This document shows, piece by piece, positions 22,086 through 52,840 of a stretch of DNA of 64,000 bases (positions within the stretch are counted from its first letter, which is position 1; each line of letters opens with the position of its first letter). Origin of the DNA: Paramoeba atlantica (lineage: Eukaryota > Protista > Discosea); NCBI GenBank assembly GCA_977017575.1, contig CDRNVI010000137.1, forward strand, positions 94,022 through 158,021, written 5' to 3'. The position numbers and the translations under genes are program-made. Under the pieces are notes generated by a model. It saw only the letters and a list, made by a program, of their open reading frames with translations. It ran no database searches and was not told the DNA's origin.

Positions 22086-22204
22086 GTCTTCGGTCATACC
22101 CAGTTGAAAGCACCCGATCCCATCAGAACTCGGAAGTTAAGCAGCTGTGGGCTCGGTTAGTAGAATGGTGGGTGACCACATTCGAATCCCGAGTGCTGAA
22201 GACC
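22086..22204 (+). rRNA. 5S rRNA
   Basis: 119 nt. GTCTTCGG..CTGAAGAC terminal stem; CCCGATCCCATCAGAACTCGGAAGTTAAGC and GGTTAGTA..GGTGACC conserved eukaryotic 5S boxes; T-run after. Confidence 0.95.
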
Positions 22205-29419: not shown

Positions 29420-32400
29420 ATTAAAAGTGATTTTTTTAATATTAATTTTCTTATAATTTCAATTTCTTAATTATGTTTCCATATTGAATAGAATGTTTTA
29501 ATTTATTTTTTAATTTTATAATATATTTTAAATTTATTTTTTAATTTTATAATGTGTTTTCAATTTATTTTTCATTTTAAAAATATTTTTTAAGTTGGTT
29601 CAATCAAATTTCTTAATTGTTTTAAATTGATGTATTTGATTTATTTTTTATTTTATTTTTTTCATATTATTTTTTTGTAATTTCAATTTCTTAATTATGT
29701 CTCCATATTGAATGCAATTTCCTAATTTATTTTCTGATTCTGTGATATTTTTAGAACTTATATTTCAGATCTATGATATTTTTTAAGTTGGTTCAATAAA
29801 ATTTCTTAATTGTTTTTGGTTGATGTATTTGATTTATTTTTTGTTTCATTTTTTTCATATTATTTTTTTGTAATTTCAATTTCTTAATTATGTCTCTATA
29901 TTGAATGCAATTCCTTAATTTATTTTCTGATTCTCTGATATTTTTAGAACTTATATTTCAGATCTATGATATTTTTTAAGTTGGTTCAATCAAATTTCTT
30001 AATTGTTTTGAATTGATGTATTTAATTTATTTTTTATTTTCTTTTTTTCACATTAATTTTTTGTAATTTCAATTTCTTAATTATGTCTCCATATTGAATG
30101 CAATTTCCTAATTTATTTTCTGATTCTGTGATATTTTTAGAACTTATATTTCAGATCTATGATATTTTTTAAGTTGGTTCAATAAAATTTCTTAATTGTT
30201 TTTGGTTGATGTATTTGATTTATTTTTTGTTTCATTTTTTTCATATTATTTTTTTGTAATTTCAATTTCTTAATTATGTCTCTATATTGAATGCAATTCC
30301 TTAATTTATTTTCTGATTCTCTGATATTTTTAGAACTTATATTTCAGATCTATGATATTTTTTAAGTTGGTTCAATCAAATTTCTTAATTGTTTTGAATT
30401 GATGTATTTAATTTATTTTTTATTTTCTTTTTTTCACATTAATTTTTTGTAATTTCAATTTCTTAATTATGTCTCCATATTGAATGCAATTTCCTAATTT
30501 ATTTTCTGATTCTGTGATATTTTTAGAACTTATATTTCAGATCTATGATATTTTTTAAGTTGGTTCAATAAAATTTCTTAATTGTTTTTGGTTGATGTAT
30601 TTGATTTATTTTTTGTTTCATTTTTTTCATATTATTTTTTTGTAATTTCAATTTCTTAATTATGTCTCTATATTGAATGCAATTCCTTAATTTATTTTCT
30701 GATTCTCTGATATTTTTAGAACTTATATTTCAGATCTATGATATTTTTTAAGTTGGTTCAATCAAATTTCTTAATTGTTTTGAATTGATGTATTTAATTT
30801 ATTTTTTATTTTCTTTTTTTCACATTAATTTTTTGTAATTTCAATTTCTTAATTATGTCTCCATATTGAATGCAATTTCCTAATTTATTTTCTGATTCTG
30901 TGATATTTTTAGAACTTATATTTCAGATCTATGATATTTTTTAAGTTGGTTCAATAAAATTTCTTAATTGTTTTTGGTTGATGTATTTGATTTATTTTTT
31001 GTTTCATTTTTTTCATATTATTTTTTTGTAATTTCAATTTCTTAATTATGTCTCTATATTGAATGCAATTCCTTAATTTATTTTCTGATTCTCTGATATT
31101 TTTAGAACTTATATTTCAGATCTATGATATTTTTTAAGTTGGTTCAATCAAATTTCTTAATTGTTTTGAATTGATGTATTTAATTTATTTTTTATTTTCT
31201 TTTTTTCACATTAATTTTTTGTAATTTCAATTTCTTAATTATGTCTCCATATTGAATGCAATTTCCTAATTTATTTTCTGATTCTGTGATATTTTTAGAA
31301 CTTATATTTCAGATCTATGATATTTTTTAAGTTGGTTCAATAAAATTTCTTAATTGTTTTTGGTTGATGTATTTGATTTATTTTTTGTTTCATTTTTTTC
31401 ATATTATTTTTTTGTAATTTCAATTTCTTAATTATGTCTCTATATTGAATGCAATTCCTTAATTTATTTTCTGATTCTCTGATATTTTTAGAACTTATAT
31501 TTCAGATCTATGATATTTTTTAAGTTGGTTCAATCAAATTTCTTAATTGTTTTGAATTGATGTATTTAATTTATTTTTTATTTTCTTTTTTTCACATTAA
31601 TTTTTTGTAATTTCAATTTCTTAATTATGTCTCCATATTGAATGCAATTTCCTAATTTATTTTCTGATTCTGTGATATTTTTAGAACTTATATTTCAGAT
31701 CTATGATATTTTTTAAGTTGGTTCAATAAAATTTCTTAATTGTTTTTGGTTGATGTATTTGATTTATTTTTTGTTTCATTTTTTTCATATTATTTTTTTG
31801 TAATTTCAATTTCTTAATTATGTCTCTATATTGAATGCAATTCCTTAATTTATTTTCTGATTCTCTGATATTTTTAGAACTTATATTTCAGATCTATGAT
31901 ATTTTTTAAGTTGGTTCAATCAAATTTCTTAATTGTTTTGAATTGATGTATTTAATTTATTTTTTATTTTCTTTTTTTCACATTAATTTTTTGTAATTTC
32001 AATTTCTTAATTATGTCTCCATATTGAATGCAATTTCCTAATTTATTTTCTGATTCTGTGATATTTTTAGAACTTATATTTCAGATCTATGATATTTTTT
32101 AAGTTGGTTCAATAAAATTTCTTAATTGTTTTTGGTTGATGTATTTGATTTATTTTTTGTTTCATTTTTTTCATATTATTTTTTTGTAATTTCAATTTCT
32201 TAATTATGTCTCTATATTGAATGCAATTCCTTAATTTATTTTCTGATTCTCTGATATTTTTAGAACTTATATTTCAGATCTATGATATTTTTTAAGTTGG
32301 TTCAATCAAATTTCTTAATTGTTTTGAATTGATGTATTTAATTTATTTTTTATTTTCTTTTTTTCACATTAATTTTTTGTAATTTCAATTTCTTAATTAT

Positions 32401-35400
32401 GTCTCCATATTGAATGCAATTTCCTAATTTATTTTCTGATTCTGTGATATTTTTAGAACTTATATTTCAGATCTATGATATTTTTTAAGTTGGTTCAATA
32501 AAATTTCTTAATTGTTTTTGGTTGATGTATTTGATTTATTTTTTGTTTCATTTTTTTCATATTATTTTTTTGTAATTTCAATTTCTTAATTATGTCTCTA
32601 TATTGAATGCAATTCCTTAATTTATTTTCTGATTCTCTGATATTTTTAGAACTTATATTTCAGATCTATGATATTTTTTAAGTTGGTTCAATCAAATTTC
32701 TTAATTGTTTTGAATTGATGTATTTAATTTATTTTTTATTTTCTTTTTTTCACATTAATTTTTTGTAATTTCAATTTCTTAATTATGTCTCCATATTGAA
32801 TGCAATTTCCTAATTTATTTTCTGATTCTGTGATATTTTTAGAACTTATATTTCAGATCTATGATATTTTTTAAGTTGGTTCAATAAAATTTCTTAATTG
32901 TTTTTGGTTGATGTATTTGATTTATTTTTTGTTTCATTTTTTTCATATTATTTTTTTGTAATTTCAATTTCTTAATTATGTCTCTATATTGAATGCAATT
33001 CCTTAATTTATTTTCTGATTCTCTGATATTTTTAGAACTTATATTTCAGATCTATGATATTTTTTAAGTTGGTTCAATCAAATTTCTTAATTGTTTTGAA
33101 TTGATGTATTTAATTTATTTTTTATTTTCTTTTTTTCACATTAATTTTTTGTAATTTCAATTTCTTAATTATGTCTCCATATTGAATGCAATTTCCTAAT
33201 TTATTTTCTGATTCTGTGATATTTTTAGAACTTATATTTCAGATCTATGATATTTTTTAAGTTGGTTCAATAAAATTTCTTAATTGTTTTTGGTTGATGT
33301 ATTTGATTTATTTTTTGTTTCATTTTTTTCATATTATTTTTTTGTAATTTCAATTTCTTAATTATGTCTCTATATTGAATGCAATTCCTTAATTTATTTT
33401 CTGATTCTCTGATATTTTTAGAACTTATATTTCAGATCTATGATATTTTTTAAGTTGGTTCAATCAAATTTCTTAATTGTTTTGAATTGATGTATTTAAT
33501 TTATTTTTTATTTTCTTTTTTTCACATTAATTTTTTGTAATTTCAATTTCTTAATTATGTCTCCATATTGAATGCAATTTCCTAATTTATTTTCTGATTC
33601 TGTGATATTTTTAGAACTTATATTTCAGATCTATGATATTTTTTAAGTTGGTTCAATAAAATTTCTTAATTGTTTTTGGTTGATGTATTTGATTTATTTT
33701 TTGTTTCATTTTTTTCATATTATTTTTTTGTAATTTCAATTTCTTAATTATGTCTCTATATTGAATGCAATTCCTTAATTTATTTTCTGATTCTCTGATA
33801 TTTTTAGAACTTATATTTCAGATCTATGATATTTTTTAAGTTGGTTCAATCAAATTTCTTAATTGTTTTGAATTGATGTATTTAATTTATTTTTTATTTT
33901 CTTTTTTTCACATTAATTTTTTGTAATTTCAATTTCTTAATTATGTCTCCATATTGAATGCAATTTCCTAATTTATTTTCTGATTCTGTGATATTTTTAG
34001 AACTTATATTTCAGATCTATGATATTTTTTAAGTTGGTTCAATAAAATTTCTTAATTGTTTTTGGTTGATGTATTTGATTTATTTTTTGTTTCATTTTTT
34101 TCATATTATTTTTTTGTAATTTCAATTTCTTAATTATGTCTCTATATTGAATGCAATTCCTTAATTTATTTTCTGATTCTCTGATATTTTTAGAACTTAT
34201 ATTTCAGATCTATGATATTTTTTAAGTTGGTTCAATCAAATTTCTTAATTGTTTTGAATTGATGTATTTAATTTATTTTTTATTTTCTTTTTTTCACATT
34301 AATTTTTTGTAATTTCAATTTCTTAATTATGTCTCCATATTGAATGCAATTTCCTAATTTATTTTCTGATTCTGTGATATTTTTAGAACTTATATTTCAG
34401 ATCTATGATATTTTTTAAGTTGGTTCAATAAAATTTCTTAATTGTTTTTGGTTGATGTATTTGATTTATTTTTTGTTTCATTTTTTTCATATTATTTTTT
34501 TGTAATTTCAATTTCTTAATTATGTCTCTATATTGAATGCAATTCCTTAATTTATTTTCTGATTCTCTGATATTTTTAGAACTTATATTTCAGATCTATG
34601 ATATTTTTTAAGTTGGTTCAATCAAATTTCTTAATTGTTTTGAATTGATGTATTTAATTTATTTTTTATTTTCTTTTTTTCACATTAATTTTTTGTAATT
34701 TCAATTTCTTAATTATGTCTCCATATTGAATGCAATTTCCTAATTTATTTTCTGATTCTGTGATATTTTTAGAACTTATATTTCAGATCTATGATATTTT
34801 TTAAGTTGGTTCAATAAAATTTCTTAATTGTTTTTGGTTGATGTATTTGATTTATTTTTTGTTTCATTTTTTTCATATTATTTTTTTGTAATTTCAATTT
34901 CTTAATTATGTCTCTATATTGAATGCAATTCCTTAATTTATTTTCTGATTCTCTGATATTTTTAGAACTTATATTTCAGATCTATGATATTTTTTAAGTT
35001 GGTTCAATCAAATTTCTTAATTGTTTTGAATTGATGTATTTAATTTATTTTTTATTTTCTTTTTTTCACATTAATTTTTTGTAATTTCAATTTCTTAATT
35101 ATGTCTCCATATTGAATGCAATTTCCTAATTTATTTTCTGATTCTGTGATATTTTTAGAACTTATATTTCAGATCTATGATATTTTTTAAGTTGGTTCAA
35201 TAAAATTTCTTAATTGTTTTTGGTTGATGTATTTGATTTATTTTTTGTTTCATTTTTTTCATATTATTTTTTTGTAATTTCAATTTCTTAATTATGTCTC
35301 TATATTGAATGCAATTCCTTAATTTATTTTCTGATTCTCTGATATTTTTAGAACTTATATTTCAGATCTATGATATTTTTTAAGTTGGTTCAATCAAATT

Positions 35401-38400
35401 TCTTAATTGTTTTGAATTGATGTATTTAATTTATTTTTTATTTTCTTTTTTTCACATTAATTTTTTGTAATTTCAATTTCTTAATTATGTCTCCATATTG
35501 AATGCAATTTCCTAATTTATTTTCTGATTCTGTGATATTTTTAGAACTTATATTTCAGATCTATGATATTTTTTAAGTTGGTTCAATAAAATTTCTTAAT
35601 TGTTTTTGGTTGATGTATTTGATTTATTTTTTGTTTCATTTTTTTCATATTATTTTTTTGTAATTTCAATTTCTTAATTATGTCTCTATATTGAATGCAA
35701 TTCCTTAATTTATTTTCTGATTCTCTGATATTTTTAGAACTTATATTTCAGATCTATGATATTTTTTAAGTTGGTTCAATCAAATTTCTTAATTGTTTTG
35801 AATTGATGTATTTAATTTATTTTTTATTTTCTTTTTTTCACATTAATTTTTTGTAATTTCAATTTCTTAATTATGTCTCCATATTGAATGCAATTTCCTA
35901 ATTTATTTTCTGATTCTGTGATATTTTTAGAACTTATATTTCAGATCTATGATATTTTTTAAGTTGGTTCAATAAAATTTCTTAATTGTTTTTGGTTGAT
36001 GTATTTGATTTATTTTTTGTTTCATTTTTTTCATATTATTTTTTTGTAATTTCAATTTCTTAATTATGTCTCTATATTGAATGCAATTCCTTAATTTATT
36101 TTCTGATTCTCTGATATTTTTAGAACTTATATTTCAGATCTATGATATTTTTTAAGTTGGTTCAATCAAATTTCTTAATTGTTTTGAATTGATGTATTTA
36201 ATTTATTTTTTATTTTCTTTTTTTCACATTAATTTTTTGTAATTTCAATTTCTTAATTATGTCTCCATATTGAATGCAATTTCCTAATTTATTTTCTGAT
36301 TCTGTGATATTTTTAGAACTTATATTTCAGATCTATGATATTTTTTAAGTTGGTTCAATAAAATTTCTTAATTGTTTTTGGTTGATGTATTTGATTTATT
36401 TTTTGTTTCATTTTTTTCATATTATTTTTTTGTAATTTCAATTTCTTAATTATGTCTCTATATTGAATGCAATTCCTTAATTTATTTTCTGATTCTCTGA
36501 TATTTTTAGAACTTATATTTCAGATCTATGATATTTTTTAAGTTGGTTCAATCAAATTTCTTAATTGTTTTGAATTGATGTATTTAATTTATTTTTTATT
36601 TTCTTTTTTTCACATTAATTTTTTGTAATTTCAATTTCTTAATTATGTCTCCATATTGAATGCAATTTCCTAATTTATTTTCTGATTCTGTGATATTTTT
36701 AGAACTTATATTTCAGATCTATGATATTTTTTAAGTTGGTTCAATAAAATTTCTTAATTGTTTTTGGTTGATGTATTTGATTTATTTTTTGTTTCATTTT
36801 TTTCATATTATTTTTTTGTAATTTCAATTTCTTAATTATGTCTCTATATTGAATGCAATTCCTTAATTTATTTTCTGATTCTCTGATATTTTTAGAACTT
36901 ATATTTCAGATCTATGATATTTTTTAAGTTGGTTCAATCAAATTTCTTAATTGTTTTGAATTGATGTATTTAATTTATTTTTTATTTTCTTTTTTTCACA
37001 TTAATTTTTTGTAATTTCAATTTCTTAATTATGTCTCCATATTGAATGCAATTTCCTAATTTATTTTCTGATTCTGTGATATTTTTAGAACTTATATTTC
37101 AGATCTATGATATTTTTTAAGTTGGTTCAATAAAATTTCTTAATTGTTTTTGGTTGATGTATTTGATTTATTTTTTGTTTCATTTTTTTCATATTATTTT
37201 TTTGTAATTTCAATTTCTTAATTATGTCTCTATATTGAATGCAATTCCTTAATTTATTTTCTGATTCTCTGATATTTTTAGAACTTATATTTCAGATCTA
37301 TGATATTTTTTAAGTTGGTTCAATCAAATTTCTTAATTGTTTTGAATTGATGTATTTAATTTATTTTTTATTTTCTTTTTTTCACATTAATTTTTTGTAA
37401 TTTCAATTTCTTAATTATGTCTCCATATTGAATGCAATTTCCTAATTTATTTTCTGATTCTGTGATATTTTTAGAACTTATATTTCAGATCTATGATATT
37501 TTTTAAGTTGGTTCAATAAAATTTCTTAATTGTTTTTGGTTGATGTATTTGATTTATTTTTTGTTTCATTTTTTTCATATTATTTTTTTGTAATTTCAAT
37601 TTCTTAATTATGTCTCTATATTGAATGCAATTCCTTAATTTATTTTCTGATTCTCTGATATTTTTAGAACTTATATTTCAGATCTATGATATTTTTTAAG
37701 TTGGTTCAATCAAATTTCTTAATTGTTTTGAATTGATGTATTTAATTTATTTTTTATTTTCTTTTTTTCACATTAATTTTTTGTAATTTCAATTTCTTAA
37801 TTATGTCTCCATATTGAATGCAATTTCCTAATTTATTTTCTGATTCTGTGATATTTTTAGAACTTATATTTCAGATCTATGATATTTTTTAAGTTGGTTC
37901 AATAAAATTTCTTAATTGTTTTTGGTTGATGTATTTGATTTATTTTTTGTTTCATTTTTTTCATATTATTTTTTTGTAATTTCAATTTCTTAATTATGTC
38001 TCTATATTGAATGCAATTCCTTAATTTATTTTCTGATTCTCTGATATTTTTAGAACTTATATTTCAGATCTATGATATTTTTTAAGTTGGTTCAATCAAA
38101 TTTCTTAATTGTTTTGAATTGATGTATTTAATTTATTTTTTATTTTCTTTTTTTCACATTAATTTTTTGTAATTTCAATTTCTTAATTATGTCTCCATAT
38201 TGAATGCAATTTCCTAATTTATTTTCTGATTCTGTGATATTTTTAGAACTTATATTTCAGATCTATGATATTTTTTAAGTTGGTTCAATAAAATTTCTTA
38301 ATTGTTTTTGGTTGATGTATTTGATTTATTTTTTGTTTCATTTTTTTCATATTATTTTTTTGTAATTTCAATTTCTTAATTATGTCTCTATATTGAATGC

Positions 38401-40083
38401 AATTCCTTAATTTATTTTCTGATTCTCTGATATTTTTAGAACTTATATTTCAGATCTATGATATTTTTTAAGTTGGTTCAATCAAATTTCTTAATTGTTT
38501 TGAATTGATGTATTTAATTTATTTTTTATTTTCTTTTTTTCACATTAATTTTTTGTAATTTCAATTTCTTAATTATGTCTCCATATTGAATGCAATTTCC
38601 TAATTTATTTTCTGATTCTGTGATATTTTTAGAACTTATATTTCAGATCTATGATATTTTTTAAGTTGGTTCAATAAAATTTCTTAATTGTTTTTGGTTG
38701 ATGTATTTGATTTATTTTTTGTTTCATTTTTTTCATATTATTTTTTTGTAATTTCAATTTCTTAATTATGTCTCTATATTGAATGCAATTCCTTAATTTA
38801 TTTTCTGATTCTCTGATATTTTTAGAACTTATATTTCAGATCTATGATATTTTTTAAGTTGGTTCAATCAAATTTCTTAATTGTTTTGAATTGATGTATT
38901 TAATTTATTTTTTATTTTCTTTTTTTCACATTAATTTTTTGTAATTTCAATTTCTTAATTATGTCTCCATATTGAATGCAATTTCCTAATTTATTTTCTG
39001 ATTCTGTGATATTTTTAGAACTTATATTTCAGATCTATGATATTTTTTAAGTTGGTTCAATAAAATTTCTTAATTGTTTTTGGTTGATGTATTTGATTTA
39101 TTTTTTGTTTCATTTTTTTCATATTATTTTTTTGTAATTTCAATTTCTTAATTATGTCTCTATATTGAATGCAATTCCTTAATTTATTTTCTGATTCTCT
39201 GATATTTTTAGAACTTATATTTCAGATCTATGATATTTTTTAAGTTGGTTCAATCAAATTTCTTAATTGTTTTGAATTGATGTATTTAATTTATTTTTTA
39301 TTTTCTTTTTTTCACATTAATTTTTTGTAATTTCAATTTCTTAATTATGTCTCCATATTGAATGCAATTTCCTAATTTATTTTCTGATTCTGTGATATTT
39401 TTAGAACTTATATTTCAGATCTATGATATTTTTTAAGTTGGTTCAATAAAATTTCTTAATTGTTTTTGGTTGATGTATTTGATTTATTTTTTGTTTCATT
39501 TTTTTCATATTATTTTTTTGTAATTTCAATTTCTTAATTATGTCTCTATATTGAATGCAATTCCTTAATTTATTTTCTGATTCTCTGATATTTTTAGAAC
39601 TTATATTTCAGATCTATGATATTTTTTAAGTTGGTTCAATCAAATTTCTTAATTGTTTTGAATTGATGTATTTAATTTATTTTTTATTTTCTTTTTTTCA
39701 CATTAATTTTTTGTAATTTCAATTTCTTAATTATGTCTCCATATTGAATGCAATTTCCTAATTTATTTTCTGATTCTGTGATATTTTTAGAACTTATATT
39801 TCAGATCTATGATATTTTTTAAGTTGGTTCAATAAAATTTCTTAATTGTTTTTGGTTGATGTATTTGATTTATTTTTTGTTTCATTTTTTTCATATTATT
39901 TTTTTGTAATTTCAATTTCTTAATTATGTCTCTATATTGAATGCAATTCCTTAATTTATTTTCTGATTCTCTGATATTTTTAGAACTTATATTTCAGATC
40001 TATGATATTTTTTAAGTTGGTTCAATCAAATTTCTTAATTGTTTTGAATTGATGTATTTAATTTATTTTTTATTTTCTTTTTT
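29420..40083. repeat. AT-rich satellite: 193-bp monomers in a 386-bp A/B higher-order repeat (~27 dimers)
   Basis: Monomer starts at 29701 (ctccata), 29894 (ctctata), 30087, 30280 ... 39737 = 29701+26x386. Monomer A has 37/193 G+C and no CpG. A diverged monomer lies at 29420-29700. Confidence 0.98.
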
Positions 40084-41312
40084 ATCAAAAATTTTTTTCT
40101 CTTTTTTGAATATTTAAAATCTTATTTTTTTCAAAAATATAAAAATCAAATTGAGAAAAATATTTTTATTTTTAGCCAAATAAAGAAAATTAGTTTTGTT
40201 TCTGAAATTGATTTTAGTTTTTTGTTTGTTTTTGTTGGTTTTTGTTTAATTGCTTCATTTCACCTAAATTCCTTTTCAAGAATTTATTATCTTCTTTTTT
40301 AAAAAAAAAAAAATCTTTTATCTTTCTTGTTAAAGTAATTTCATTGTAAAATTTAAAACTTTTAGTTCATGAATACATTCTTTTTTATGAAACCTTTGAA
40401 TGAGAAAAGTTGACTCTTTGTTAAACTTTAATTAAGTAATGTTATTGTTTTTATGAAAAATTGATTTTTAATAATTCAAATGAAAAAGAATGAATAAAAA
40501 CTTTCACAACTATAAGTTGTTTTTTTCAAATTGACTAACAACAAAACAGAAAACTTTTCAAAACCTAGGGTAATCTGCTTTTTGGAGTGAAATCAAAGAT
40601 ATGAAAACACTTTACAAAGATTGAACCTTCTCAAATTGATAAAATTGTTAAGTATGTGTAAAAATGTAATGGAAACCAAGTTTCATTGATCCAAACCACC
40701 TTCAAAGATTGGATTAATACCACTTTCTCAAAAGCAATCTTTTTCACCTGAATTTATTTCTTTGTTTAGAGTGAAAAACAACTTTTTCTTATTGATTCAG
40801 AGTCATTTGAGATAGAGAGGTGCAGTTTGTTTGAGGAAAAGCTGAAACAAAATACAAAAAAATTGTAAGAAAAAATTGATGCTACTCACTCTCAATTGAT
40901 CATAAATATTAATGAAACTGATTTTAATTGCAAAAAAGATACTGAAAAACTCAAAGTTGTTTTAATATATAATTGCTCCTATATATATTGTTCCTCTTGA
41001 AATGAATTCTATATCACTTTAATACTTATAGTTGGTATTATTGGATGGAGTCTTTCAATTTTTGCAACTATCAAAACAATATTCTTTGTTTTAGACTTAA
41101 AGGTGATGTATAATTTCTCAGTAAATGAGTAGTATTATATAATATTATTTTCATCATCAAATATCAATAATAAGTTATTTTCTTATTAAATTGATAAAAT
41201 TTTTGTTCTAAAAGTAATTATAAGATGTTGATTTTTAGAGTTCAAAGATAATACCAAAACTCTTCTTATCTTAAATAGTTGTTTTGTTTATAGTGTTGCA
41301 AATTTTCAAGCC

Positions 41313-42930
41313 TTAACTTGTAATTTCACAAAGTAATTCATTTAAAGCATAATTTTTTCTAGTATGGGTTTTGAACATTGTCTTGGTAAGAATTATACAA
41401 TCTTCAACAATCACAATCTTTTTTATCATTGATCTAATACTTTGTATCCCTTTTAAGTAGTCTATAAATTCACCAATATTGTTAAAGCTAAGAGAAATGG
41501 TTTCAAACCCACCACATATTTCTCTCTCTTTCCTGAAAACTGCAAAATCTGCACCCCCCAGATGAAGGCCTGTATATCTTGAATCATTATAAAACATTTA
41601 AAAGCTTTTGAATTTAAAGTTTTTCTTCTTTTTAGGTTCTTTTTTGATTTGAGTTCTTGGAGGCTAAAGAAGGATTTTATTCTTTCTCAGGATTTTTCTA
41701 ACAATTTTTATAGTAAACTAAACTAATTTAGTTTCTTCTGCACACACTATGAGCCACAAACTTAGTAAGGCAGCACTCACCACAGAGGTTTCTTGTCTAG
41801 TAAAATACTTTGAGACAAGACCACATACATTTTTAGTTTCTTGCCAATTGAGTACTTTCAGCAAAATACATTTCCTTCCTCTTGCTTGAAGAAAACCCTC
41901 AACCACAAAGCATTTTTCCAGTAGATGAGATTATAACTCCTTTTCTCAGTGGCAGAGGCAACAACTTGAATCTTGGTTTGAGAAGTGAAACAACTTGTTT
42001 CTTGTAGATAGTTCTTTTATTAGAAATTTAAGTAAATTCTTCTTAAACTGAGGTTTAATTGCATGAACCAAGTTGTACACCACATACTCAGCTCTTCTTT
42101 TCCCCACATACAAGTCTTTGATTTCAATTGAAATCATTTGAGACATATTGGTATATGTAACACAAGTGGCCTGGCCAAACACAACTTTGGAAGAAAGGCT
42201 TTGGGCTGCAATGAAAGCATTCTTCCACATGGCTTCAATGGAGAGAGGATTCTAATAATCACTCTTCATTGGTGGACAAGAGGTGAAAAGAGCCCAATTA
42301 AAAACAATAGGGTGATGTAGTTGAGGATTTGAGTCCAAAGAGGATAGCATAAAGTAAGAACAGAGGTTTTAGTGATGGCATAGGCACCCAGGGCTGAGCA
42401 AATGGATTTCCACATCAAAGAGGTGATAGATTTTAGGATCAACTTGAATCTCACTAAGTATTCCATACATGGAGTTAGATAGATATTGACCATCCTCACT
42501 CTTGAGTAAAAATTCCCACCTCTCTTTTTAATTGCTGTTCCAACTTTCTTCATCTTTTGGACCACCTTCTCTCAATCTTTGAGAGAAGATAACCATTTAT
42601 TCAATCTCACTCCCAGTTTCATTACCACAGTAATTGAGTCTTGCCATCTCAGACCAGGGGCCTACTGGTTTGTAAGACTCAGTTGAGAGGACAAAGCACT
42701 TATTAAAGTTCAGTTTAGCTTCAGTTGCTTCTTTATATTTCTTAAAGGTTGGAGTGAGAGAATTGATGGTTTCAACTCTCTGAAGCACTATCCCCAAATC
42801 ATCCATAAAGCCTGACAGATCTTGGAGGTTGTGTTTCTTCTTCAAACTCACAAGGAGGATGTCAAACACAATCACAAACAATAGAAGGGAGATTGGGCAT
42901 CTTTGTCTAACTCCTGTCCAGCTTTGGATT
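41313..42930 (-). pseudogene. L1/Tx1-like non-LTR ORF2, C-terminal half of RT and downstream region
   Basis: GVRQRCPISLLLFVIVFDILL, GFMDDL and EATEAKLNFNKC are L1-type RT motifs B, C and D. CpG-free, many breaks. Confidence 0.8.
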
Positions 42931-43108
42931 GATTCTTTGGTGCCTGCCCTTTTGGATTCACTAATCACTTTGGGACAAAAAAATTTCTTGGGAGAGAACA
43001 TAGCCAGAGGTCAACCTGCATTTTTTGGCTCTGAAACACGACTGTGGAAGTGATGTGGCAAAGTGGATAGGCAAAAAAGACCCCAAAAAAACGCGGAAAG
43101 GCGAAAAG

Positions 43109-43910
43109 ATATGAACCCAATTGCCAAAAAGGATGATAATTGGGTTCTTTTTCACTCAAAATTTTTGGGTGGGATCAAGATGGCGTGGGAGAGGAGGAGG
43201 TGTTCTTTTTCAACTTCTCGAAATGGAAAACAAACTGATGATCGAAGATACTTGGGAGATTGAAGAATATCTCCATTTGATTCAGAAAGAGCAAAACACT
43301 TCAAATAGAAGAAAAAAAGCGAAAAAAATAGCAGGACCTGGTGGAAACAAACAAGACGAGATGACAATGCTGATGAATGAACAAATGGTTCATTGTGTTC
43401 TGGCACAAAGAATCCCAAAGACCCTCGAAAAATTGGTAAAAAACACTCTCATGAGTTTTTTTTTTTTCTAAAGATTCTTTTTTTCACTCACACACAAAAT
43501 TCTTTTAGTGGAGGGGAAAAGGTTGAAAACATTGGTGCTCTCGCCGGGTTTTCATTCAACATTTCCCTGAGGCCCTCTTTTTCTTTTTGGTCGATAATAA
43601 CGTTACCAAAACCAAAACAAATCGAAAAACCGGGAAGAAAGAATTTTGGGGACAACTTGATCTCCCTTCACAAATCCGAAAGAAGTTGGGGGTCATTGCC
43701 TACCAGAAAATTTTTCGGGATGGGTCCACTGCAACAGTGACTGGCCCTGTGAAAATCAAATTTTCACAGGAAAAAAAATTGTTGTCGATTTCTTATGGCT
43801 ATTTTCTTCAAAACCAAGATGGAAGGCCAGCAAAGGGGATGGCTGAAAACTGGAAACTCCCAGTAGTTGCCCCAGTTGTTGTTGTGAAAGAGGAGGCTCT
43901 CGACAAATAG
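43109..43910 (+). other. unidentified coding-like segment near the left end of the transposon (probably spliced, disrupted)
   Basis: Open frames 43121-43471 and 43587-43910 separated by a GT..AG intron-like tract (~43431-43509). No recognisable domain. Confidence 0.35.
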
Positions 43911-44073
43911 TGAAAAATAAATTATTTTTTTTATCCGAGGCACCGCCTTTTTTTTTTTTTTTTCTCTTGAGAAAAGACCAAAAAACAAAGCAGCTGCTTT
44001 GTTTCGTGACCCACTGAAGAAGAAGAAAAAGGAGGAAAAGACAGGGTTGTGTGTTGTGTTGTGTTGTGTTCAA

Positions 44074-47000
44074 ATGGCTGAGAGAGGAGTCTCTAGAAAG
44101 AAACAGTTGGTGTGTAGTCATTTGGTGCAGTTTTGTGTGAGAAGGAATGAGAAAAGTTCATGTGGAGTTTTCAGTTCAAAACAAGCCAAAAGTATTCATC
44201 AACGTTTACGCCATTATTGTCCAGATGAATGTAAGAGGTGTCAAAAAGAACAAGGTTTGAATTCTTTTCCTCTTCTTCGATCTTCAGTTTCAGAGAGTAG
44301 TTGGGTGGGTGGGTTTAAAGTTTCTGTTTGTCTTTTTTCTTTTTGGTGGGTTTGAAAGTGTTGCTATTCTGAAAGAATTTGGTGTTTGGAATTAGAAAGA
44401 GCTGCTGCTGCTGTTGATCAAACTGCTGAGAGTATGATGGGTATGGGAGCAATTCCTCAAGTTTTTCCACAACAAGGACAACAGGAACAGGTCTTTTTTT
44501 TTTGCAAAGAGAAGAGTCTTTTTATTCTTCAAGTCAAGTTAAGTGATGACACTGCAAGAAAAATAATTTTTGTTTTTTAGACTAGAAGAAGAGGTGGTAC
44601 CACCTCTGCTTTTTCCACCACCACCACCACACTCCCCATTGCTGCTTCCAACAGTACCTTTACCACCACCACCACCACCGCCACTTTTACTCCTCCTGTG
44701 ACTGCTTCTTGCCATCACCGTAGTTCCTCAGATGAGAAATTCCTCCGAACCAACTGGGTGAATGAAGCTGTGGGATCACTTGGTTTTGAAAATCCAACCT
44801 CTTTCTTGGCTCAGCTTTTAAGTGATTGCAACACTTCTCAGATTGTTGAAGTCTTAGAGAAACTCTTTCAGTTGGATGATGGAAATGCAAGAAGGGGGAG
44901 GAGTGGTTTTTCTCAGAAACAACAGATTAGAAACTTTTTTGGACTCCCAAATGATGCACAAGAAGTATCAAAAAAATATCGGTGTATGAAAAAACAGGAA
45001 AAGGCAGAGTTTTTTGGAAGATTGTTTCTAAGATTGGGTCTCACTAGGTATCAGATTCGAGGTCTTAATTCTGAACTGGGTTGGGAATTTTCAGATTGTC
45101 AGTTCAAGTATTGGTTCCAAAAACTAAAAGATCAGATTCCCTTGGAAAAAACAGACCATGGTTGGAGAGTGAATGATGTTGAGGGTGAAGTGAATAGAAT
45201 GTTTGATGATGATTGGGAGGGCAACAAGTATCCTCTTTGGGATGAATATGATCGGGTGAACAACAATATGAATCACCAAGAAGAAGCAACTATTGGTGGT
45301 GTTGCTAATGCAGAGGAAAATTTAAAGCTGAAGATGATCTTTTCTGCTGATGGGGGTTCTTTTGATCGAAGGAACAAAGGAGTTGTTGTGAAATTGATAC
45401 GTGGTGATGAAGAGTGGTGGGCAAAAGGAACTCGAACTTGGAGAGCAGTCCTCAATTTAAGTTTGGGTGTCTTTGTAATGAAAGAGAGCTTTAAAACCTT
45501 TCAAGAAGAGATATCTCCGATTTATCAGATGATTTACCAGATAAGTATTTTTTTGTAATGCTTTTAATTTAATTTAATATTAATATTAATATTAATTTAA
45601 TTTAATTTAATTTTTGACTTTTTTAATTTTTTTTTTTAAAAAAAATTAATTTAATTTTTCGTTTGATATTCATTTCATTAATTTTCTTCTCTTTTTTACC
45701 TACTTTTTCTTTCCCCTCTCTCCTCTCTCTTTCTTCTCTTGGGACTCTTTTGTGATTTTTATTAAAAAAAGATTCAGTATTCAGATTTCAAGGAATGAAC
45801 AATTTCATTCACTGAAACACATGACATGTTATGCTCTTCACTTCTTTTTGGTCATGGTGGCAAATCAATATTTCATCACACATCAAAAAGGCCTTGTTGG
45901 CGTTGTAACATTGTTCGAGATAAGGATGATAGAGGGCTTTGGGATGATCATACAAAGGTTTGCAGCTTCTTCCAAATTTTATTAAAATAATTTACTCCAT
46001 AAAAATGAATAAGAAAATAAAAGAAGAAAAATTTCAAAAATAATTAAGAAAAAAAAAATAATTTCAACTAAAAAAAATAATTTTGTTTTTACTAACATCC
46101 ACCCCCCACCCATATTTTTTTGTCAGCATCACTTTTGGGATAATCAATTTGGTGGTTATAGTATCTTTGAAAGTTTTGCTGAGGCTGATGATGAACTGGC
46201 AATTAATCTTGTTGGTAACTTGGATCAAAAACATACATGGTGAACTTTAGAACAAAAAAAAAGCGATTTTCAATTGGTTCAGGGCTGGGAGGGATCCAAG
46301 AACAGTCTTGCAAAATTTATGAATCAAATGGGAATGAGAAATCCTCCAATAACTCCATCGCAACCATGGGACCACAACTTGGACTTGATCCACTTTGTTG
46401 AAGGGACTTGTAGAAATGTTGTTAAACTTTTTGTGATGGATGTTTCTCTGTGTAAGTTAAAAAAAGAATATTTTGAAAATAATACTTTTGAAAAGAATAA
46501 AATTCTCATTGAAAAAGAAAATAGATTCACCTCATGATTTAACGATTTGAATTGCTTTTTATCTCATTGGAGGAGTGAAAATTCCAGATCCATCACAAAA
46601 GGTATTCAACCTTTGGGAGAGAATCAAAAAAGTAAGACCTAGTTACGTTCAATGGATCAAGATTTTAAGGGGTTTCCCCAATAAAACTGGTTGGTTTATT
46701 CTTCTCTTCTTTCTTTGATATCTTCTTCATTTTTAAAATTTTATAAATAATTATAATAAAAAAAAAATAATATTTTTTGAAATACTTTTTTTTTTTTTTG
46801 AATATCTTAATTATTACATTCTCTCTCTTTATTTTTCTACAACTGACAATATATTTTTGTTTTCAAAAAAAATCATTTATTTTAGCCTGAAAAGGAGCTG
46901 TTGATTTTCTTTATGATGAATATCTTATTAAATTAGCTGAATGGATGGATTCAAATCTCCAAAGTGAAAAAGTCAAAAGCATTTCACATGAACAAGAGGA

Positions 47001-50000
47001 ACCAGAAGTCCTTCCTTTTTCGGCGTTTAATGCAGCTTTGTTGAATGCAAAAGGTTGATTTACTATTTCTTGTTTTTTCCAAACAAACAAAAACTCTCTT
47101 TTTTTGATCAAATAATTTTATTCAGAAAAAAAAAATTTCAAAAGTTTTTTCATGATTTTTGTTATTCAGATTTTGATTTATCGATCATCGATGTTTTAAT
47201 TGGAGATTCAGAACGAGACACATTTGAACCAGAATATGAGTTTCTAACGTTGACTTATGACATTCTCCAAATGGCTTCAGCCCCATATCAACTCTCTCAT
47301 CAGAAGATCAATATTGTTCGAAAGGCTTCCCTTCTTTGGGGAAGAAAATATAACGAATGTAATTTCTCCCCTCTTTATTGGGCTCCTTATTTACATACCC
47401 TCCATGATCACCTTCATTGGGAGTTATTGAGGTTTGTTTTTTCTTTATTATTTTTGTGGTGTTGAAATTTTTTAAAAATGATGGTTCATAATATCCATCC
47501 TTCTTTTTTGATTTTCAGTTTTTCTGCAATACAGAATAAAGTCACTCCCCTCTGACATACACAACACAGATACCCTCTTCCACGAAGAGCAGGATTTGCA
47601 ATTGAAGGAGCCATTCTTGCAGCTCGTTCTCATTGTTGGGCCCAAAAGCCATTTGGAGGTAGACATAGGCAAGGAGTGAGCAGTCAAGAGAAAGGAACTT
47701 TTTCAATCCAAATGAATGCCTTGATCAAAGGGATGATGGAGCGAAGTGAGGCATTGAGATCAGAGAAAAAACTTGAAAACAGAGCAAGCAAAATAAGTGC
47801 AAATGAACCTTCTCGACTTATTCGTGAGGTATTTTTTGTTGACCCTTTTTTCCCCCAAATTTGTTGTTTTCTGAAAATTTCAAATTATTTTTTTTTAAAA
47901 TAAAATATGAAAACTCAAAAGCAGATTTCTAATAATTCTTTCCTTCTACCAAAATCAGGGTCACTCCTCAAAACTTGTTCCCTCTGGTTCTTCAAAGCAA
48001 CCCCCCCTCCTCAAAAGAACAAAATTACCTAATTCTGTTGCCTGCAAATCAGCTTATCAGTATGCTTCTTTGTGTTGCCAGCCCCTTCAGGATACTTTGG
48101 ATCCAATAACAAATTATCAATCCTCTTCTCATCGTCACAACATCCGCTCTTTCAACCCTTCATCACACTACATGTCTTCCCAAACCACTCCAATTAACCT
48201 CTCTTCCCCTTCCCCTTCCCCTTCCCCTTCCCCTTCCTCTTCCCCTTCCCCTTCCCCTCCCCCTTTCCTTTCTTCTCTTTCTCAATCACCAGGAAAAAAT
48301 TCTCAATTTTCTTTTTCCTATTCTTCCTTTCCTCTACCATCCCAAACATCCCAAAGTAATTTCTCTTCTTCCACTCATCTCTCAGGAAGTCCCTGTTCTT
48401 CACAGTCTTCTTTTCCTTCTCTTTCTGGTTCTTGTCCTTCTCCTTCTCTTTCTCCTTCTCCTTCTCACCAACCCTATACATCTTGGCCAACCATGTGTCA
48501 ATCATCTCAATCATCCCAACAATCCTGTATGGGAAGATTTTCTCTTTCTCCTCAGCAGCCTTCTCCTTCTCCTTCTCCTCCTCTTTCTTGCCCTTCTGTT
48601 TCTCCTTTTTCTTCTTTTCCTTCTCGCCAATCCTCTCATCAACCACTGCCTTTTCCTTCTCCAACTCCTTCTTCCCAAACCACATCCCCACATCCCCATG
48701 TTTCTTTCAGGAAGTTTCCCTTTTCTTTTTCCCCGTCTTTTGCATTTGCGACTCCCTCTCCCCCCCCATCATCAACCCCCAAAATGGTGGGTAATTTCTC
48801 ATCTTCATTTACTCATTTCCCAGTTCATTCTCATCATCCTTCTTTCTCTCCAAGTTCTCGTTTTTCACACTCACCATCTTCTTCATCTCCCTTATTGCCT
48901 TTTTCTCCTCAGTCATCTTCTTCTCTTTCTTTTTCTCTTTGTTCTCCTTTCTCTTCTCCTTCTATTTCTCATTGTTCTTCTTCTTTCTCTTTTTCTCCTT
49001 CTCCTTCTCCCCCTCCACCCTCTCTTTCTTCTTTCTCTCCTTTTGCTCCTTCCACTCCTTTCTCAGGAAGTTCCAGGAACTCTTCACACTCTTCTTTTCC
49101 TTCTCTATCTTCTACTTCTCGCCCCTTCTCCTCTCCCTGTTCTTCTCCTTATTTCTCTCCTCTTCTCTCTTCTCCCTCTCCTTCATCCTCTCCCTCTTCC
49201 TCTCCCCTTCTCTCTCCCTCCCTCTCCCCCTCTTCCTCTCCCTTTTCCTCTTCCTCTCCTCTTTCCTCTCTCTCAGTGAGAAATGCTCTTAAACTCGTTG
49301 AAATAAACGAACACCAAGCATTTCTTGCTTTGGAGCAAGAATATGCGCACATGATGACAGAAATACTCCCAAAGGTTTTTGTGATTTTTTTTCTTTCTCA
49401 TTGAGAGGAATGTTTCATTTTTTCATTTTTAGATTGATGAAGAAATTGAAGCTGGCCATTGGGACCCAATGGCTCGGGTTCAATGTATTCAAAAGATCAA
49501 AAAGCTGTCTTCTGCAAAATCAAACACCATCTACAATCATCTGATTTCTAATGCTATTCTTGTGCAAAATATGTGGTTCTTAGAGTTCCCAAACTAGGAA
49601 AAGATGAAGAAAGCAAAAAAATGGTTGAAGGAGACCGAAGTACCAATGAAAGACAACCTCAAGAATGTTTTGATTCCTGGTAAATGGGTGGAGGAGGAAG
49701 TTTGTTTTTTTTTCTTTTCTTATTTTTCATTATTTTATCATTGTTTTTATCATCTCATACCCAATATTTAGGTGGTTTCTTGGTACTGTCAGAGTTTGAA
49801 ATCCCGTTTTGTAGGAGCTCTCTTGGAATCTTTTCTTTTGGATCCACAAGTAAAAACTGATCAAAAACTCTCAAATCTTAGTCAAGTATTTTTTTTTCAA
49901 AAAATTTTTTTCAGAAATTAGAAAAAAGATTGGCAGCCAGAACATTTTTTTACCTATCAGTAATTTTCATTTTTCAGGTGATGATTTGGCAAAAAACAGG

Positions 50001-50682
50001 TTTTTATTGCATTTGTAACCCAGGAAATCACTGGGTTGTGATTGATGGAAAAATCGATGAGGCAAACAGAAAGGTTGAATTAACACTGTATGACAGTCTG
50101 AAGCAACAGCAAACAAATGACAAACCTCTCCAAGGTTTTTTGTGTTTTTTTTGTTCTTCTTTCCCTTTATTCTTCCAGTTACTGAAACTTTTTTATTTTT
50201 TTTTAATATTTTCAACAAAGATATTCAAGCTCTTTTAGAAAAACATTTTCAGGAAAGGTCTGAAGATAAGTTATCATTTCAAAGAAAAATTGCAAGTAAG
50301 GGGCCTGACCAGCAACAGGTTTTTTTTCTTGACTACCTGAATATAGATGGAGAATCTCTTGATTGTTATGTTTTATTTTTCATCCAAAACTGATTTCTTT
50401 CATTTTTTCTTTCAGAATGTCACAGAGTGTGGTGTTTTGGCTTTATTTACATTCTATTGTCTTACTCAGTCATATCCTCTGACTTTTACCCTTGCTGATT
50501 GTCCTGATATTCGTGAACATATTTTCTACAGAGTTTATGAGGAACTTCTTCCAGGTCAAACAGAAAAAAGGAAAAGGATGGATGAAGAGCGATTAAATGA
50601 ACCAAGAAGTACTGGAGTTCAAAGATCGAGAAGAAGCCAGCTGGCAACAAAGAGAAGGAAAACAACAAATCCATGGATTTGA
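44074..50682 (+). pseudogene. multi-exon DDE transposase (RAG1/Transib/CMC-like CCHH core) fused via Ser/Pro linker to Ulp1/C48 cysteine protease
   Basis: Spliced by eye with GT-AG introns. N-terminal C2H2-like finger; IFSADG (D, 45349); THDML..LFGHGG..PCWRC (D, 45823); GMRNPP..LDLIHFVEG; YLHTLHDH..LLR|YPLPRRAGFAIE (E). Then CNPGNHWVVI..LYDSL and QQQ|NVTECGVL (His 50029, Cys 50428). Four in-frame TGA (45796, 46241, 46548, 46888) plus lesions near 49560-49690. Confidence 0.8.
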
Positions 50683-50969
50683 TAATAAAAAATTACATTT
50701 CTTAAGAATTGCTCTTCTTCTTATCCCTTTCAAGTATTTTTTCTTTTCTTCTTTTCTTGGGGGGGGGGGGGGGGGGGGGGGGAACCTGTAGACAATAAAA
50801 TTTTTGGATTGTCTACAAGTCAGATTTTTTTCTCTTAATAAATTTGGTCCCCCACTCAACCCTCTCAACTTAAACTTCAGTTTTTCAAGACTGTTTTTTT
50901 ATTTACTAAGTTTTATTTATTTTTTACAGCTTTTTTTTTCTCAGACTTTTTTGCTTTTTTTGGGGTTGT

Positions 50970-51833
50970 TCATGACTCCATTGTTTCTCTTACCATTTCA
51001 CGCTTTGGGATTTTGCATGCCCGCAAATAAGAACGATGGATAATGAAAAGACCAACCATTCGATCATCTTCAGAAGGGCTTGATGGATCTTCTTCACCAT
51101 AATACCCACGAGTTCTGTGACATAACTGGTCAGTATCCAAAAGGAGAACATCCCCAATTCGAAGACCAAAAGCAATATCCAAACCACCAATCTCCAGTCC
51201 ACCAACTTGATGTTTCCCAATATGGATCATAACTAAGACAGAGAGAAAATCATTTTGGTCATAATGCATTTTGGCTGATCCTGCAGGGCACATGAATAAA
51301 TGAAACATCCCAAACTGTCCCTCAACATCGATTAATCCGTGTTTTTCCAGACAATTCCAAACATCAGGATGATACTTTTCCACCAATCTGGAAAGCTGCT
51401 TCCCAATTGATGTCAGAACAGAATCGAGAACTTTTTCGACTTCGACCTCGTAGTGGCCTCCTTTTCCAGCAGGATGAAAGGTATAATGTCCTTGTTGGGT
51501 CCATCCACCACAAAACATAAAAGCTCTCTCCCCTCTTTTTTTGTCAACTGAAGAGTCCCAATGTGTCTCTTGGCATGACAGCAAAGCTACTTGGAATTGT
51601 TTCATTTCTTCCTCAGTGAAAACCGATTTGAGGTAGTGTCCACGATAGCACTCCGTAACACGAGAATTTTTTTGGCGTTGGACCTCGAGGTACACAGACT
51701 CATTAATTATGAGACAGTGCTTCGAATGTTCCCAGTTTGGTTTTGTGGTTGCTTTCAGAGTTTTGTTCACAACTCTGAGTCCACAGCCTCTCTTTCTTTT
51801 TTTCGGCTCAGGATCATCAGGGTTTGAGGCCAT
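50970..51833 (-). CDS. TET/JBP-family 2-oxoglutarate/Fe(II) dioxygenase
   Basis: Intact, intronless ORF (287 aa from ATG 51833) with NLS PKKRKR. Motifs: HYDQND (HxD), VLVMIH..GGLEI..LRIGDVLLLD..LCHRT (distal His), DDRMVGLF (2OG-binding Arg), with spacing typical of Tet_JBP. Confidence 0.82.
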   Translation of the reverse strand: MASNPDDPEPKKRKRGCGLRVVNKTLKATTKPNWEHSKHCLIINESVYLEVQRQKNSRVTECYRGHYLKSVFTEEEMKQFQVALLSCQETHWDSSVDKKRGERAFMFCGGWTQQGHYTFHPAGKGGHYEVEVEKVLDSVLTSIGKQLSRLVEKYHPDVWNCLEKHGLIDVEGQFGMFHLFMCPAGSAKMHYDQNDFLSVLVMIHIGKHQVGGLEIGGLDIAFGLRIGDVLLLDTDQLCHRTRGYYGEEDPSSPSEDDRMVGLFIIHRSYLRACKIPKREMVRETMES

Positions 51834-52329
51834 TTTACGAGGTTGTTGTTTTGTACAAAAAAGGTTCCCAGTATTAAGCGGGCGCTGGTGAATCTCTTTT
51901 ACAACTTCCACAACTCAAAAGAAACTGTTCTGAAAAGAAAAAGGAGGGGGAAAAAGAAAAAAAGAACCATGACGCAGAAAACCGTGTCGTGGAAAAAAAA
52001 TTTTTCACAAGTTTTTTTTTGATGCTCTAAAAGGAAGCTTAGCACAGAAGCTTTTTTTTAAAGAGCTTTGAAAGGGACATGATCCATCTCTTCAAGCTAG
52101 TGAAAACAAATGCACCCCATTCCTGTTTTCTCATTCCCCGAAAACGATGTCACAGAACTGGCAAGAATGGGGGCTAATTAAATCAGGGCTGTGAAAAAAA
52201 ATAATTGTTTGTCTTTCATTTCTTTCATCACCTTGAAAAAACTCCGCATTGCAGAAAGTCATTCTTGACCTTTTCAGACTTTTTGTTTCTGGAAAAGTCA
52301 ATAGCAGGCAACAGAATACTACCCTGCAA

Positions 52330-52840
52330 TGAATTTTAACCCAAAGTGATTTAGCAGCCAGGTTACATATTCACAAAGGACTTTCTCAACAATATAGATT
52401 GCTTGAGGGGGGCATTCAGACTTTTGAGAATATGAAGGAGTGCATCACAATTCACATAATCATATGCCTTGCAAAAGTCTGTTTGGAGGAGAGTCACATC
52501 TTTTCCCTCTGCCAAAGCTTTGTAAAAAGAGTTATATACTGATTCTACTGCTTCATTAATTGATCTCCTGAAAATTCATAATTTCACCTGCTTGTTGAAT
52601 TAATTTTACTCACATATCAAAGTACTTCTCTTGTGTTGCCTTATACAAAAAGAAGGGAATACCATCAGGTCCTGTGCTGGTGTTGTTGGTTCTCTGAAGT
52701 AGTTTATCAACTTTCTTCCTATCCACATCATGTTTCTCAACTGGAAGGAAATGAGGTTGGTGGTCAGCAATCAGTTCATCAAGAGAATCTTTGTTATATG
52801 GTCTTTCTGTGCTGAGAAAACCCTCTCAAAAATCCTTAAT
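52330..52840 (-). pseudogene. L1/Tx1-like RT N-terminal half
   Basis: NTSTGPDGIPFFLYK at ~52670 and DF(AK)AYDYVNCDALLHILKSL at ~52480. Collinear with the C-terminal half at 42600-42930. Confidence 0.75.

Follow-up and report, generated by a model that had tools for sequence, protein, structure and literature searches.

A probable CMCT-type transposase in a decayed, intron-rich transposon of Paramoeba atlantica

RAG1, the assembler of antibody genes, derived from a Transib transposon, and its kin (Chapaev, Mirage, CACTA, Plavaka, and ESTA) are known mainly from animals, plants, and fungi. A 64,000-nucleotide stretch of the protist Paramoeba atlantica (GenBank assembly GCA_977017575.1, contig CDRNVI010000137.1, positions 94,022 to 158,021 of the forward strand; hereafter the window, in whose coordinates all positions are given) carries an intron-rich gene in which an initial annotation, made from the letters alone, had recognized a transposase core resembling RAG1. 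The locus therefore raises the question of what kind of transposase is encoded here, and how far its likeness to RAG1 reaches. Our analysis makes it likely that the enzyme is a DDE (Asp-Asp-Glu) transposase of the CACTA-Mirage-Chapaev-Transib (CMCT) group, and that its gene belongs to an autonomous cut-and-paste transposon at 42966-52348. The family is a rare, deeply diverged, and undescribed CMCT lineage that is missed by current profile libraries.

Gene model and conserved motifs

Six-frame reading and trial splicing revealed a multi-exon gene on the + strand at 44074-47828, in which the seven exons of 44581-47828 sum to 2331 nt, a multiple of three that yields a single frame of 777 codons. 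RNA data came from the public run X1, with three further runs of the same organism covering the stretch. Contigs of X1 join three pairs of positions (45540/45766, 47053/47170, and 47431/47570) and so confirm three introns, including the one across which, as had been proposed, the last motif is assembled. The exons and confirmed introns, with the evidence for each, are as follows; L005 denotes a second copy of the transposon, described below.

44074-44254, + strand: first coding exon with a Cys/His zinc-finger module; ATG start, open reading frame (ORF) intact in L005
44581-45540, + strand: exon spanning a DNA-binding-like helical region, the pre-RNase H part, and strands 1-3 of the RNase H fold, with the first catalytic Asp at 45349; family alignment, paralog model, RNA contigs across the exon
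45541-45765, + strand: intron of 225 nt, RNA-confirmed (X1 joint 45540/45766); ends AT..AA in the window copy, GT and AG in L005
45766-45957, + strand: exon with the second catalytic Asp at 45823, CxxC at 45895-45906, and an in-frame TGA at 45796-45798; Asp and CxxC invariant across the family
46127-46451, + strand: exon between the second Asp and the Glu, with HHF, TLE, and PIT..H..LIH..EG..VKL blocks and an in-frame TGA at 46241-46243; family alignment, contiguous RNA contig 46125-46289
46525-46689, + strand: predicted exon with an LW.R..K...V.W...L.GF block and an in-frame TGA at 46548-46550; frame, GT-AG sites, and alignment to paralogs P0008, P0010, and P0012, no RNA joint seen
46886-47053, + strand: exon with RNA-confirmed 3' junction (X1 joint 47053/47170, GT..AG) and an in-frame TGA at 46888-46890
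47170-47431, + strand: exon with LTYDIL and the His motif (His at 47394, 47403, and 47409); RNA joints on both sides, motif conserved in the related loci L001 and L003
47432-47569, + strand: intron, RNA-confirmed (X1 joint 47431/47570, GT..AG; shorter side of the joint 95 letters)
47570-47828, + strand: exon with the presumed catalytic Glu at 47604-47606; RNA contig over 47568-47779, conservation of the Glu

A further joint, 45957/46127, is suggested by an X1 contig beginning at 46125 with five letters left unplaced, while the introns 46452-46524 and 46690-46885 are based on frame, GT-AG sites, and alignment to relatives. An intron at 46217-46249 was ruled out by the unbroken RNA contig 46125-46289. 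At the 5' side, a middle exon at about 44396-44490, between 44254 and 44581, is likely judging from the sequence; 44254 can be linked to 44581 by many in-frame splicing options, none of them with an RNA joint. The finger pattern of the first exon, C..H..C..H..H.C..C..C, recurs at the N-termini of P0007, P0009, P0012, and L003. At the 3' side, the gene probably extends beyond 47828, because a GT donor follows at 47829. A Ser/Pro-rich low-complexity ORF of 444 codons (48070-49404, + strand), with Glu/Lys-rich frames on the - strand, lies downstream of the transposase exons.

In the 777-codon model the presumed catalytic and zinc-motif residues are Asp257, Asp340, Cys364, Cys367, His679, His684, and Glu703. 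The two Asp are 83 residues apart, the second Asp is followed after 24 residues by the Cys and after 363 by the Glu, and a third His stands between the two of H679-x4-H684. The distance from His684 to Glu703 is 19 residues, the value given in the initial annotation, and the motifs quoted there were found at their places: SADGG (Asp 45349), THDML (Asp 45823), CWRC (45895-45906), HTLHDH (47394-47411), and AIEGA (Glu 47604). Its overall description, an intron-rich DDE transposase whose Cys2/His2 zinc motif set is arranged as in RAG1, was thereby borne out. One residue has to be corrected: the position before TLE, where a stop had been written as "(R)", is really Trp, since the runs and L005 read TGG.

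We searched for the family with phmmer, using the largest exon against 1.84 billion representative proteins. Eleven matches were obtained, five of them fragments of close copies and six diverged proteins, 292-578 residues long. When P0008 and the family alignment were used as queries in word-based searches, two more relatives were added and nothing outside the family appeared; a search with the C-terminal exons yielded an MMETSP transcript fragment and others. The relatives derive from the ENA assembly of L005, a second ENA assembly, and JGI metagenomes; those from the same assembly as L005 are therefore regarded as paralogs in this genome.

Both Asp and the CxxC are kept in every relative covering them, at identities of 22-46%. 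The first Asp lies in an invariant S.DGGS.D.RN block, and the second in the context N/H-D-M/A. Further conserved blocks are HHF, TLE, PIT..H..L(I)H..EG..K..VKL, and LW.RLDK. Three sequences share W..[YK][FL]H..H.H..W..L[RK], followed by an intron in the same place and then by [VI]E[SG]; the H-x2-H-x-H motif with a Glu 19-20 residues on is kept in two paralogs, and L001 and L003 share the intron's position in the protein. No variation at the Glu is seen among three paralogs, and Glu703 is presumably the third catalytic acid. By this conservation, the motifs are more than chance. In Pfam scans, family members showed only weak C2H2 fingers and a SAP motif, and each window exon ORF, six paralogs, and the L001 C-terminal exons only weak C2H2 fingers. 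L003 itself (ENA ERZ25071330 ctg560060_36x_c, 1-14540; its name ends in _c) carries a diverged homolog in tandem units of about 6.4 kb, in each of which the transposase exons and a tail with a SAP motif are accompanied by two long ORFs, rich in Ser/Pro, on the opposite strand.

Transposon ends and decay of the window copy

The limits of the element were obtained by comparison of copies. L005 (ENA ERZ24900291 ctg2320l) aligns at 97.9% over window positions 42965-52348 and has unrelated flanks, and the left boundary is the same to the base in the more diverged copies L006 and L007. The element and its borders are:

42597-42965, - strand: left half of an interrupted reverse-transcriptase gene of a long interspersed nuclear element (LINE); Pfam RVT_1, E 5e-9; reverse-transcriptase homology ends at the element end
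42966-52348, + strand: whole transposon copy, 9,383 bp; limits of the L005 alignment, left base of L006 and L007
42966-42974, + strand: left terminal inverted repeat CACTTTGGG; start of the homology shared by four copies, the 9-mer occurring once in the 64-kb window
50970-51911, - strand: convergent ORF of 313 codons inside the element, shared with L005; an HxD...H pattern by eye only
52340-52348, + strand: right terminal inverted repeat CCCAAAGTG; last base of L005 homology, exact reverse complement of the left end, once in the window
52349-52515, - strand: right half of the interrupted reverse-transcriptase gene; ORF with the reverse-transcriptase block TDFCKAYDYV

The dinucleotide AT is found at both junctions of the window copy. 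When one AT is removed, the two reverse-transcriptase halves fall into one frame, which argues for a 2-bp target duplication. No second copy of the flanking LINE that could serve as an empty site was present in the window or the loci. The split LINE gene has two TAA stops near the junction that could derive from CAA. Alternative limits at 43037 and 51991, with CACGAC ends of six matching bases and GAAA flanks, are wrong, because the homology of L005 extends to 42966 and 52348. A repeat finder detected no long inverted repeats.

For other ORFs inside the element, Pfam and PDB sequence searches supported neither TET/JBP for the ORF at 50970-51911 nor Ulp1 for the ORFs at 49433-50682 (+ strand). 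In L006, positions 10574-12448 hold an ORF of 470 residues with a weak DDE_1 (pogo-like) match; it lies at the place where window 45577-46865 lacks a counterpart and is probably a nested insertion.

The window copy is dead: its private TGA stops and destroyed splice sites are all C-to-T or G-to-A changes. In-frame TGA stops occur at 45796, 46241, 46548, and 46888, where the runs read CGA, TGG, CGA, and CGA, respectively (at 46888 with C in about half of the depth), and the splice sites at 45541 and 45765 are mutated; the runs read G at 45765 and G at 46243. Over 44000-48100, compared with the four public runs, at all 18 sites where the runs agree with one another and differ from the window, the window has A or T and the runs G or C. 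L005 carries the base of the runs at 17 of these 18 sites, so the 18 changes are confined to the window copy; further, L005 shows G at 45541, C at 46888, and GT-AG at all introns. Other copies keep frame-preserving bases at the decayed sites, and at least one copy is transcribed and spliced. Rare variants of multi-copy sequence are lost from contigs, which explains why the contigs of the runs lack the window alleles. A strain difference was rejected as the reason for their absence, as the family is multi-copy. L005 itself keeps all GT-AG sites over its positions 2572-5848, and five of its exons are one or two bases off the window length; these differences are either frameshifts or long-read homopolymer errors.

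The changes have a clear direction. Between the window copy and L005 we counted 120 transitions against 15 transversions. CpG sites account for six of the 18 private changes, against 4.8% expected from the CpG share of C dinucleotides (p 1.4e-4), and the observed/expected ratio of CpG is 0.18-0.44 across the window. The private changes are a signature of cytosine deamination, partly at methylated CpG, and the CpG depletion together with the C-to-T changes suggests that cytosines in this organism are heavily methylated and deaminated. Less probably, an artefact of assembly at modified bases produced the changes in the window; however, L005 shows its own set of such changes.

Predicted fold and placement within CMCT

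With the family alignment as input, the structure was predicted for the paralog P0008, whose 578 residues lie in one exon and stop shortly before the His motif. The whole model reached a predicted local distance difference test score (pLDDT) of 55, with 78-88 in the core, and a model of a 261-residue domain reached 66. Both models consist of helices and a small strand/helix unit followed by the order strand-strand-strand-helix-strand-helix. D285 lies in strand 1 and D367 after strand 4, and by alignment these residues are equivalent to the window Asp at 45349 and 45823.

When the P0008 model was compared with the PDB by Foldseek, the first 43 matches were all RAG1 or HzTransib, with probabilities up to 1.0. 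With VIA-align, 32 rows of RAG1, Transib, or BbRAGL were obtained at Z 6.1-8.1, the next unrelated row standing at 4.5 and HIV RNase H, Hermes (3.0), and foamy-virus integrase at about 3. In this alignment residues 192-368 of the model correspond to mouse RAG1 461-707, and D367 falls within one residue of D708. A Foldseek-free search of 48,161 PDB representatives also placed RAG1 first, with BbRAGL and HzTransib as the sole other multi-domain matches. To our knowledge, no CACTA, Chapaev, or Mirage structure has been solved, and the PDB matches therefore indicate membership in the clade, not closeness to RAG1.

Predicted structures widened the comparison. Against ESM Atlas models, the domain model gave template modelling (TM) scores of 0.61 for an unnamed Mucoromycota cluster, 0.60 for arthropod Transposase_21/DUF1258, 0.58 for Plavaka, 0.57 for plant Transposase_21, 0.56 for DUF1280, and 0.53 for RAG1, the lowest of the ten sets listed. 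Matches to AlphaFold DB clusters were only unnamed animal, fungal, and protist proteins. As far as models can tell, the shape comparison thus appears to prefer no CMCT lineage. Structure prediction, which the initial annotation had proposed for the reconstructed protein, gave for the paralog core an RNase H fold with both Asp, but no RAG1 TM score above those of the CACTA, Plavaka, and Chapaev models.

The motifs C(2)C and H(3-4)H are common to the whole CMCT clade, whose elements have CA..TG ends and duplications of 2-5 bp (PMC12730594); the motif set is therefore not RAG1-specific. Motifs, core fold, and ends of this kind are found here. The C(2)C between the second Asp and the Glu is the CWRC, invariant in all members reaching the motif, H679-x4-H684 stands shortly before the Glu, the paralog models contain the RNase H-fold core with one Asp on strand 1 and one after strand 4, and the ends CACTTTGGG...CCCAAAGTG follow the CA..TG rule. 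The RAG1-like reading first given to the gene accordingly survives as far as the nearest folds across the PDB are RAG1, HzTransib, and BbRAGL, and loses its specificity in that its series of motifs belongs to the whole clade.

Sequence profiles gave no such connection. RAG1 Pfam families did not match the window exons or the six paralogs up to E 1-5, and among PDB sequences neither phmmer nor, at E up to 10, family hidden Markov models (HMMs) retrieved a chain of RAG1 or Transib; by-eye matches to RAG1 beyond the catalytic and zinc motifs are without statistical support. The Pfam models of Transposase_21, DUF1258, Plavaka, and DUF1280 likewise had no match among the window exons, six paralogs, and L001 C-terminal exons. 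Language-model features placed RAG1 and Chapaev nearest. For the paralog core, the clusters of RAG1_RNase_H/ZnC2/ZnH2 reached 0.96 and DUF1280 0.95, with no CACTA among the matches listed; for the window exon the values were 0.93 for DUF1280, 0.92 for RAG1, and 0.79 for Transposase_21. The same search with the 86-residue exon of the His motif was uninformative. DUF1280 is the Chapaev transposase and clusters with RAG1, while Mirage clusters with CACTA (PMC3985635). The Chapaev similarity of 0.93-0.95 is only a lead: besides the lack of a DUF1280 match, the flanks TAAT/ATTT (window) and AGTT/GAGA (L005) show no 4-bp duplication.

Several points weigh against the assignment to CMCT as an autonomous transposon. 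No sequence-profile method ties the family to any named transposase family. The models are those of a paralog that is 26-27% identical over exon 44698-45540, with a shallow alignment and modest pLDDT values (55 and 66); the P0008 model stops before the His motif, and the Glu-bearing part lies outside the modelled core. Z values of 6-8 fall in a range in which chance arrangements can arise, so that weight was put on the gap to unrelated rows and on the length covered. The right end is known from two copies only, and while the window copy has AT/AT, the L005 flanks TT/GA show no target duplication. We nevertheless consider the CMCT assignment likely. Within the group, a position on the Transib/Chapaev side is somewhat more likely.

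An EnSpm-like element with a 2-bp duplication, standing on the CACTA/Mirage side or with the recently named ESTA/Lanisha, is possible, if rather unlikely. The ends begin with CACT as in CACTA, a 2-bp AT duplication would restore the interrupted reverse-transcriptase frame, and the Transposase_21 and Plavaka models reached TM 0.57-0.60. Mirage makes 2-bp duplications. ESTA, which together with Lanisha was compared by published description only, has TA duplications, HHpred matches to RAG1, and TET/JBP genes (PMC12730594). However, L005 lacks the duplication, none of the Transposase_21, DUF1258, and Plavaka Pfam models matched, and CACTA features reached only 0.79 for the exon and were not among the matches listed for the paralog core. 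The features specific to EnSpm/CACTA are also absent: the ends read CACTT, not CACTA, and the flanks AAT/ATT and GTT/GAG show no 3-bp duplication.

We think it unlikely that the family belongs to the Transib/RAG1 lineage proper or is its sister, which would make it a protist Transib. The best solved-structure matches, which span the DNA-binding/dimerisation, pre-RNase H, and RNase H parts, are in line with such a placement, as are the RAG1-annotated clusters that dominate the nearest named language-model clusters with no CACTA among the matches listed, the H-x4-H, the His-to-Glu distance of 19 against the 20 of RAG1, and the end CACTTTG, which matches the heptamer CACAGTG at five of seven bases. 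Yet the PDB cannot discriminate here, holding no CACTA, Chapaev, or Mirage structure, and predicted CACTA, Plavaka, and Chapaev models fit equally well or better than RAG1. With no match to RAG1 profiles and no 5-bp duplication in either copy (flanks CTAAT/ATTTA in the window, CAGTT/GAGAG in L005), Transib membership, or a status as clear RAG1 relative, is not demonstrated.

A more specific proposal, that the family is an ancient protist Transib/RAG1-Chapaev branch apart from CACTA, recently mobile, and equipped with a cytosine-modifying dioxygenase as second gene that evades silencing by CpG methylation, is doubtful at present. If true, this would extend such transposons beyond fungi for the first time and push the RAG1-type transposase architecture back towards early eukaryotes. 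Finally, a host gene domesticated from a transposase is extremely improbable, for even though the gene is spliced and transcribed and relatives retain its intron positions, there are several copies at 67-98% identity with different flanks, a shared exact left end, and inverted termini, the window copy interrupts a LINE and has many stops, and L006 is itself broken by another transposon.

If the transposase works as its relatives do, contact with the element ends would fall to the fingers and the helical part, and two Mg2+ ions would be coordinated by the D-D-E triad. A zinc ion held jointly by the Cys pair and the His pair may fasten the long insert to the core, as in RAG1/Transib. Nicking would take place at the CAC ends, the 3' ends would be transferred into the new site, and hairpin formation on the flanking DNA and a 2-bp staggered insertion would be expected by the same analogy.

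Genomic setting and comparison with known systems

The same 64 kb hold a complete ribosomal DNA unit (668-7497, - strand) with large subunit, 5.8S, and a long 2.1-kb small subunit gene, a separate 5S gene (22086-22204, + strand), and a tRNA gene (11728-11800, - strand), together with transposons and a satellite. The satellite (29583-40098, 10.5 kb, 18% G+C) has a unit of 193 bp and a 386-bp higher-order repeat at 99% identity.

With this element, the same catalytic and zinc architecture appears in a microbial eukaryote, diverged beyond the reach of Pfam and HMMER. It offers an outgroup-like sequence for rooting CMCT and for asking which features of RAG1 are ancestral. Its C-to-T decay, the CpG-depleted genome, and the unexplained second gene make it a usable case for methylation-linked transposon silencing in protists. 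Annotation pipelines based on ORFs or on profiles will miss this family.

With RAG1 and Transib the family has in common a probable DDE triad, a CxxC a short way past the second Asp, and an H-x4-H some 20 residues ahead of the Glu. The helical DNA-binding part, the pre-RNase H part, and the RNase H core follow in the same order, the best and only multi-domain matches among solved structures belong to this group (including HzTransib and BbRAGL), and the element ends begin with CAC. It differs in having no detectable sequence-profile similarity, no 5-bp duplication, and many introns in the present gene. In the RAG1 core the spacings are 20 residues from His to Glu, 19 from the second Asp to the Cys, and 254 from the second Asp to the Glu; the latter two are 24 and 363 here. 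N-terminal C2H2-like fingers stand in place of the RING and nonamer-binding parts of RAG1, and no RAG2-like partner lies nearby.

Chapaev (DUF1280), known from animals and making a 4-bp duplication, is among the nearest named language-model clusters (0.93-0.95) and shares the C(2)C and H(3-4)H motifs, whereas the present family has no DUF1280 Pfam match and its flanks lack the 4-bp duplication. With EnSpm/CACTA, Plavaka, and Mirage (Transposase_21, PF18759, DUF1258), among which large multi-gene elements are usual, the family has in common the motif set, the domain shape (TM 0.57-0.60), and termini of the type CACT...; it differs from them in the lack of a Pfam match and of a 3-bp duplication, and in a lower feature similarity.

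ESTA, described from rust fungi only, comprises CMCT-type transposases that are tied to RAG1 by remote methods alone and make a TA 2-bp duplication (Kojima 2025, PMC12730594). For ESTA and other fungal transposons carrying TET/JBP, the second gene was proposed to counter cytosine methylation (PMC12730594). The present element differs from ESTA in its host, in a probable AT duplication in one copy instead of TA, and in a second ORF whose TET/JBP identity is unconfirmed. By the published description, it resembles ESTA in its CMCT-type transposase, its remote tie to RAG1, and possibly a 2-bp duplication, and it resides in a host genome that is strongly depleted of CpG.

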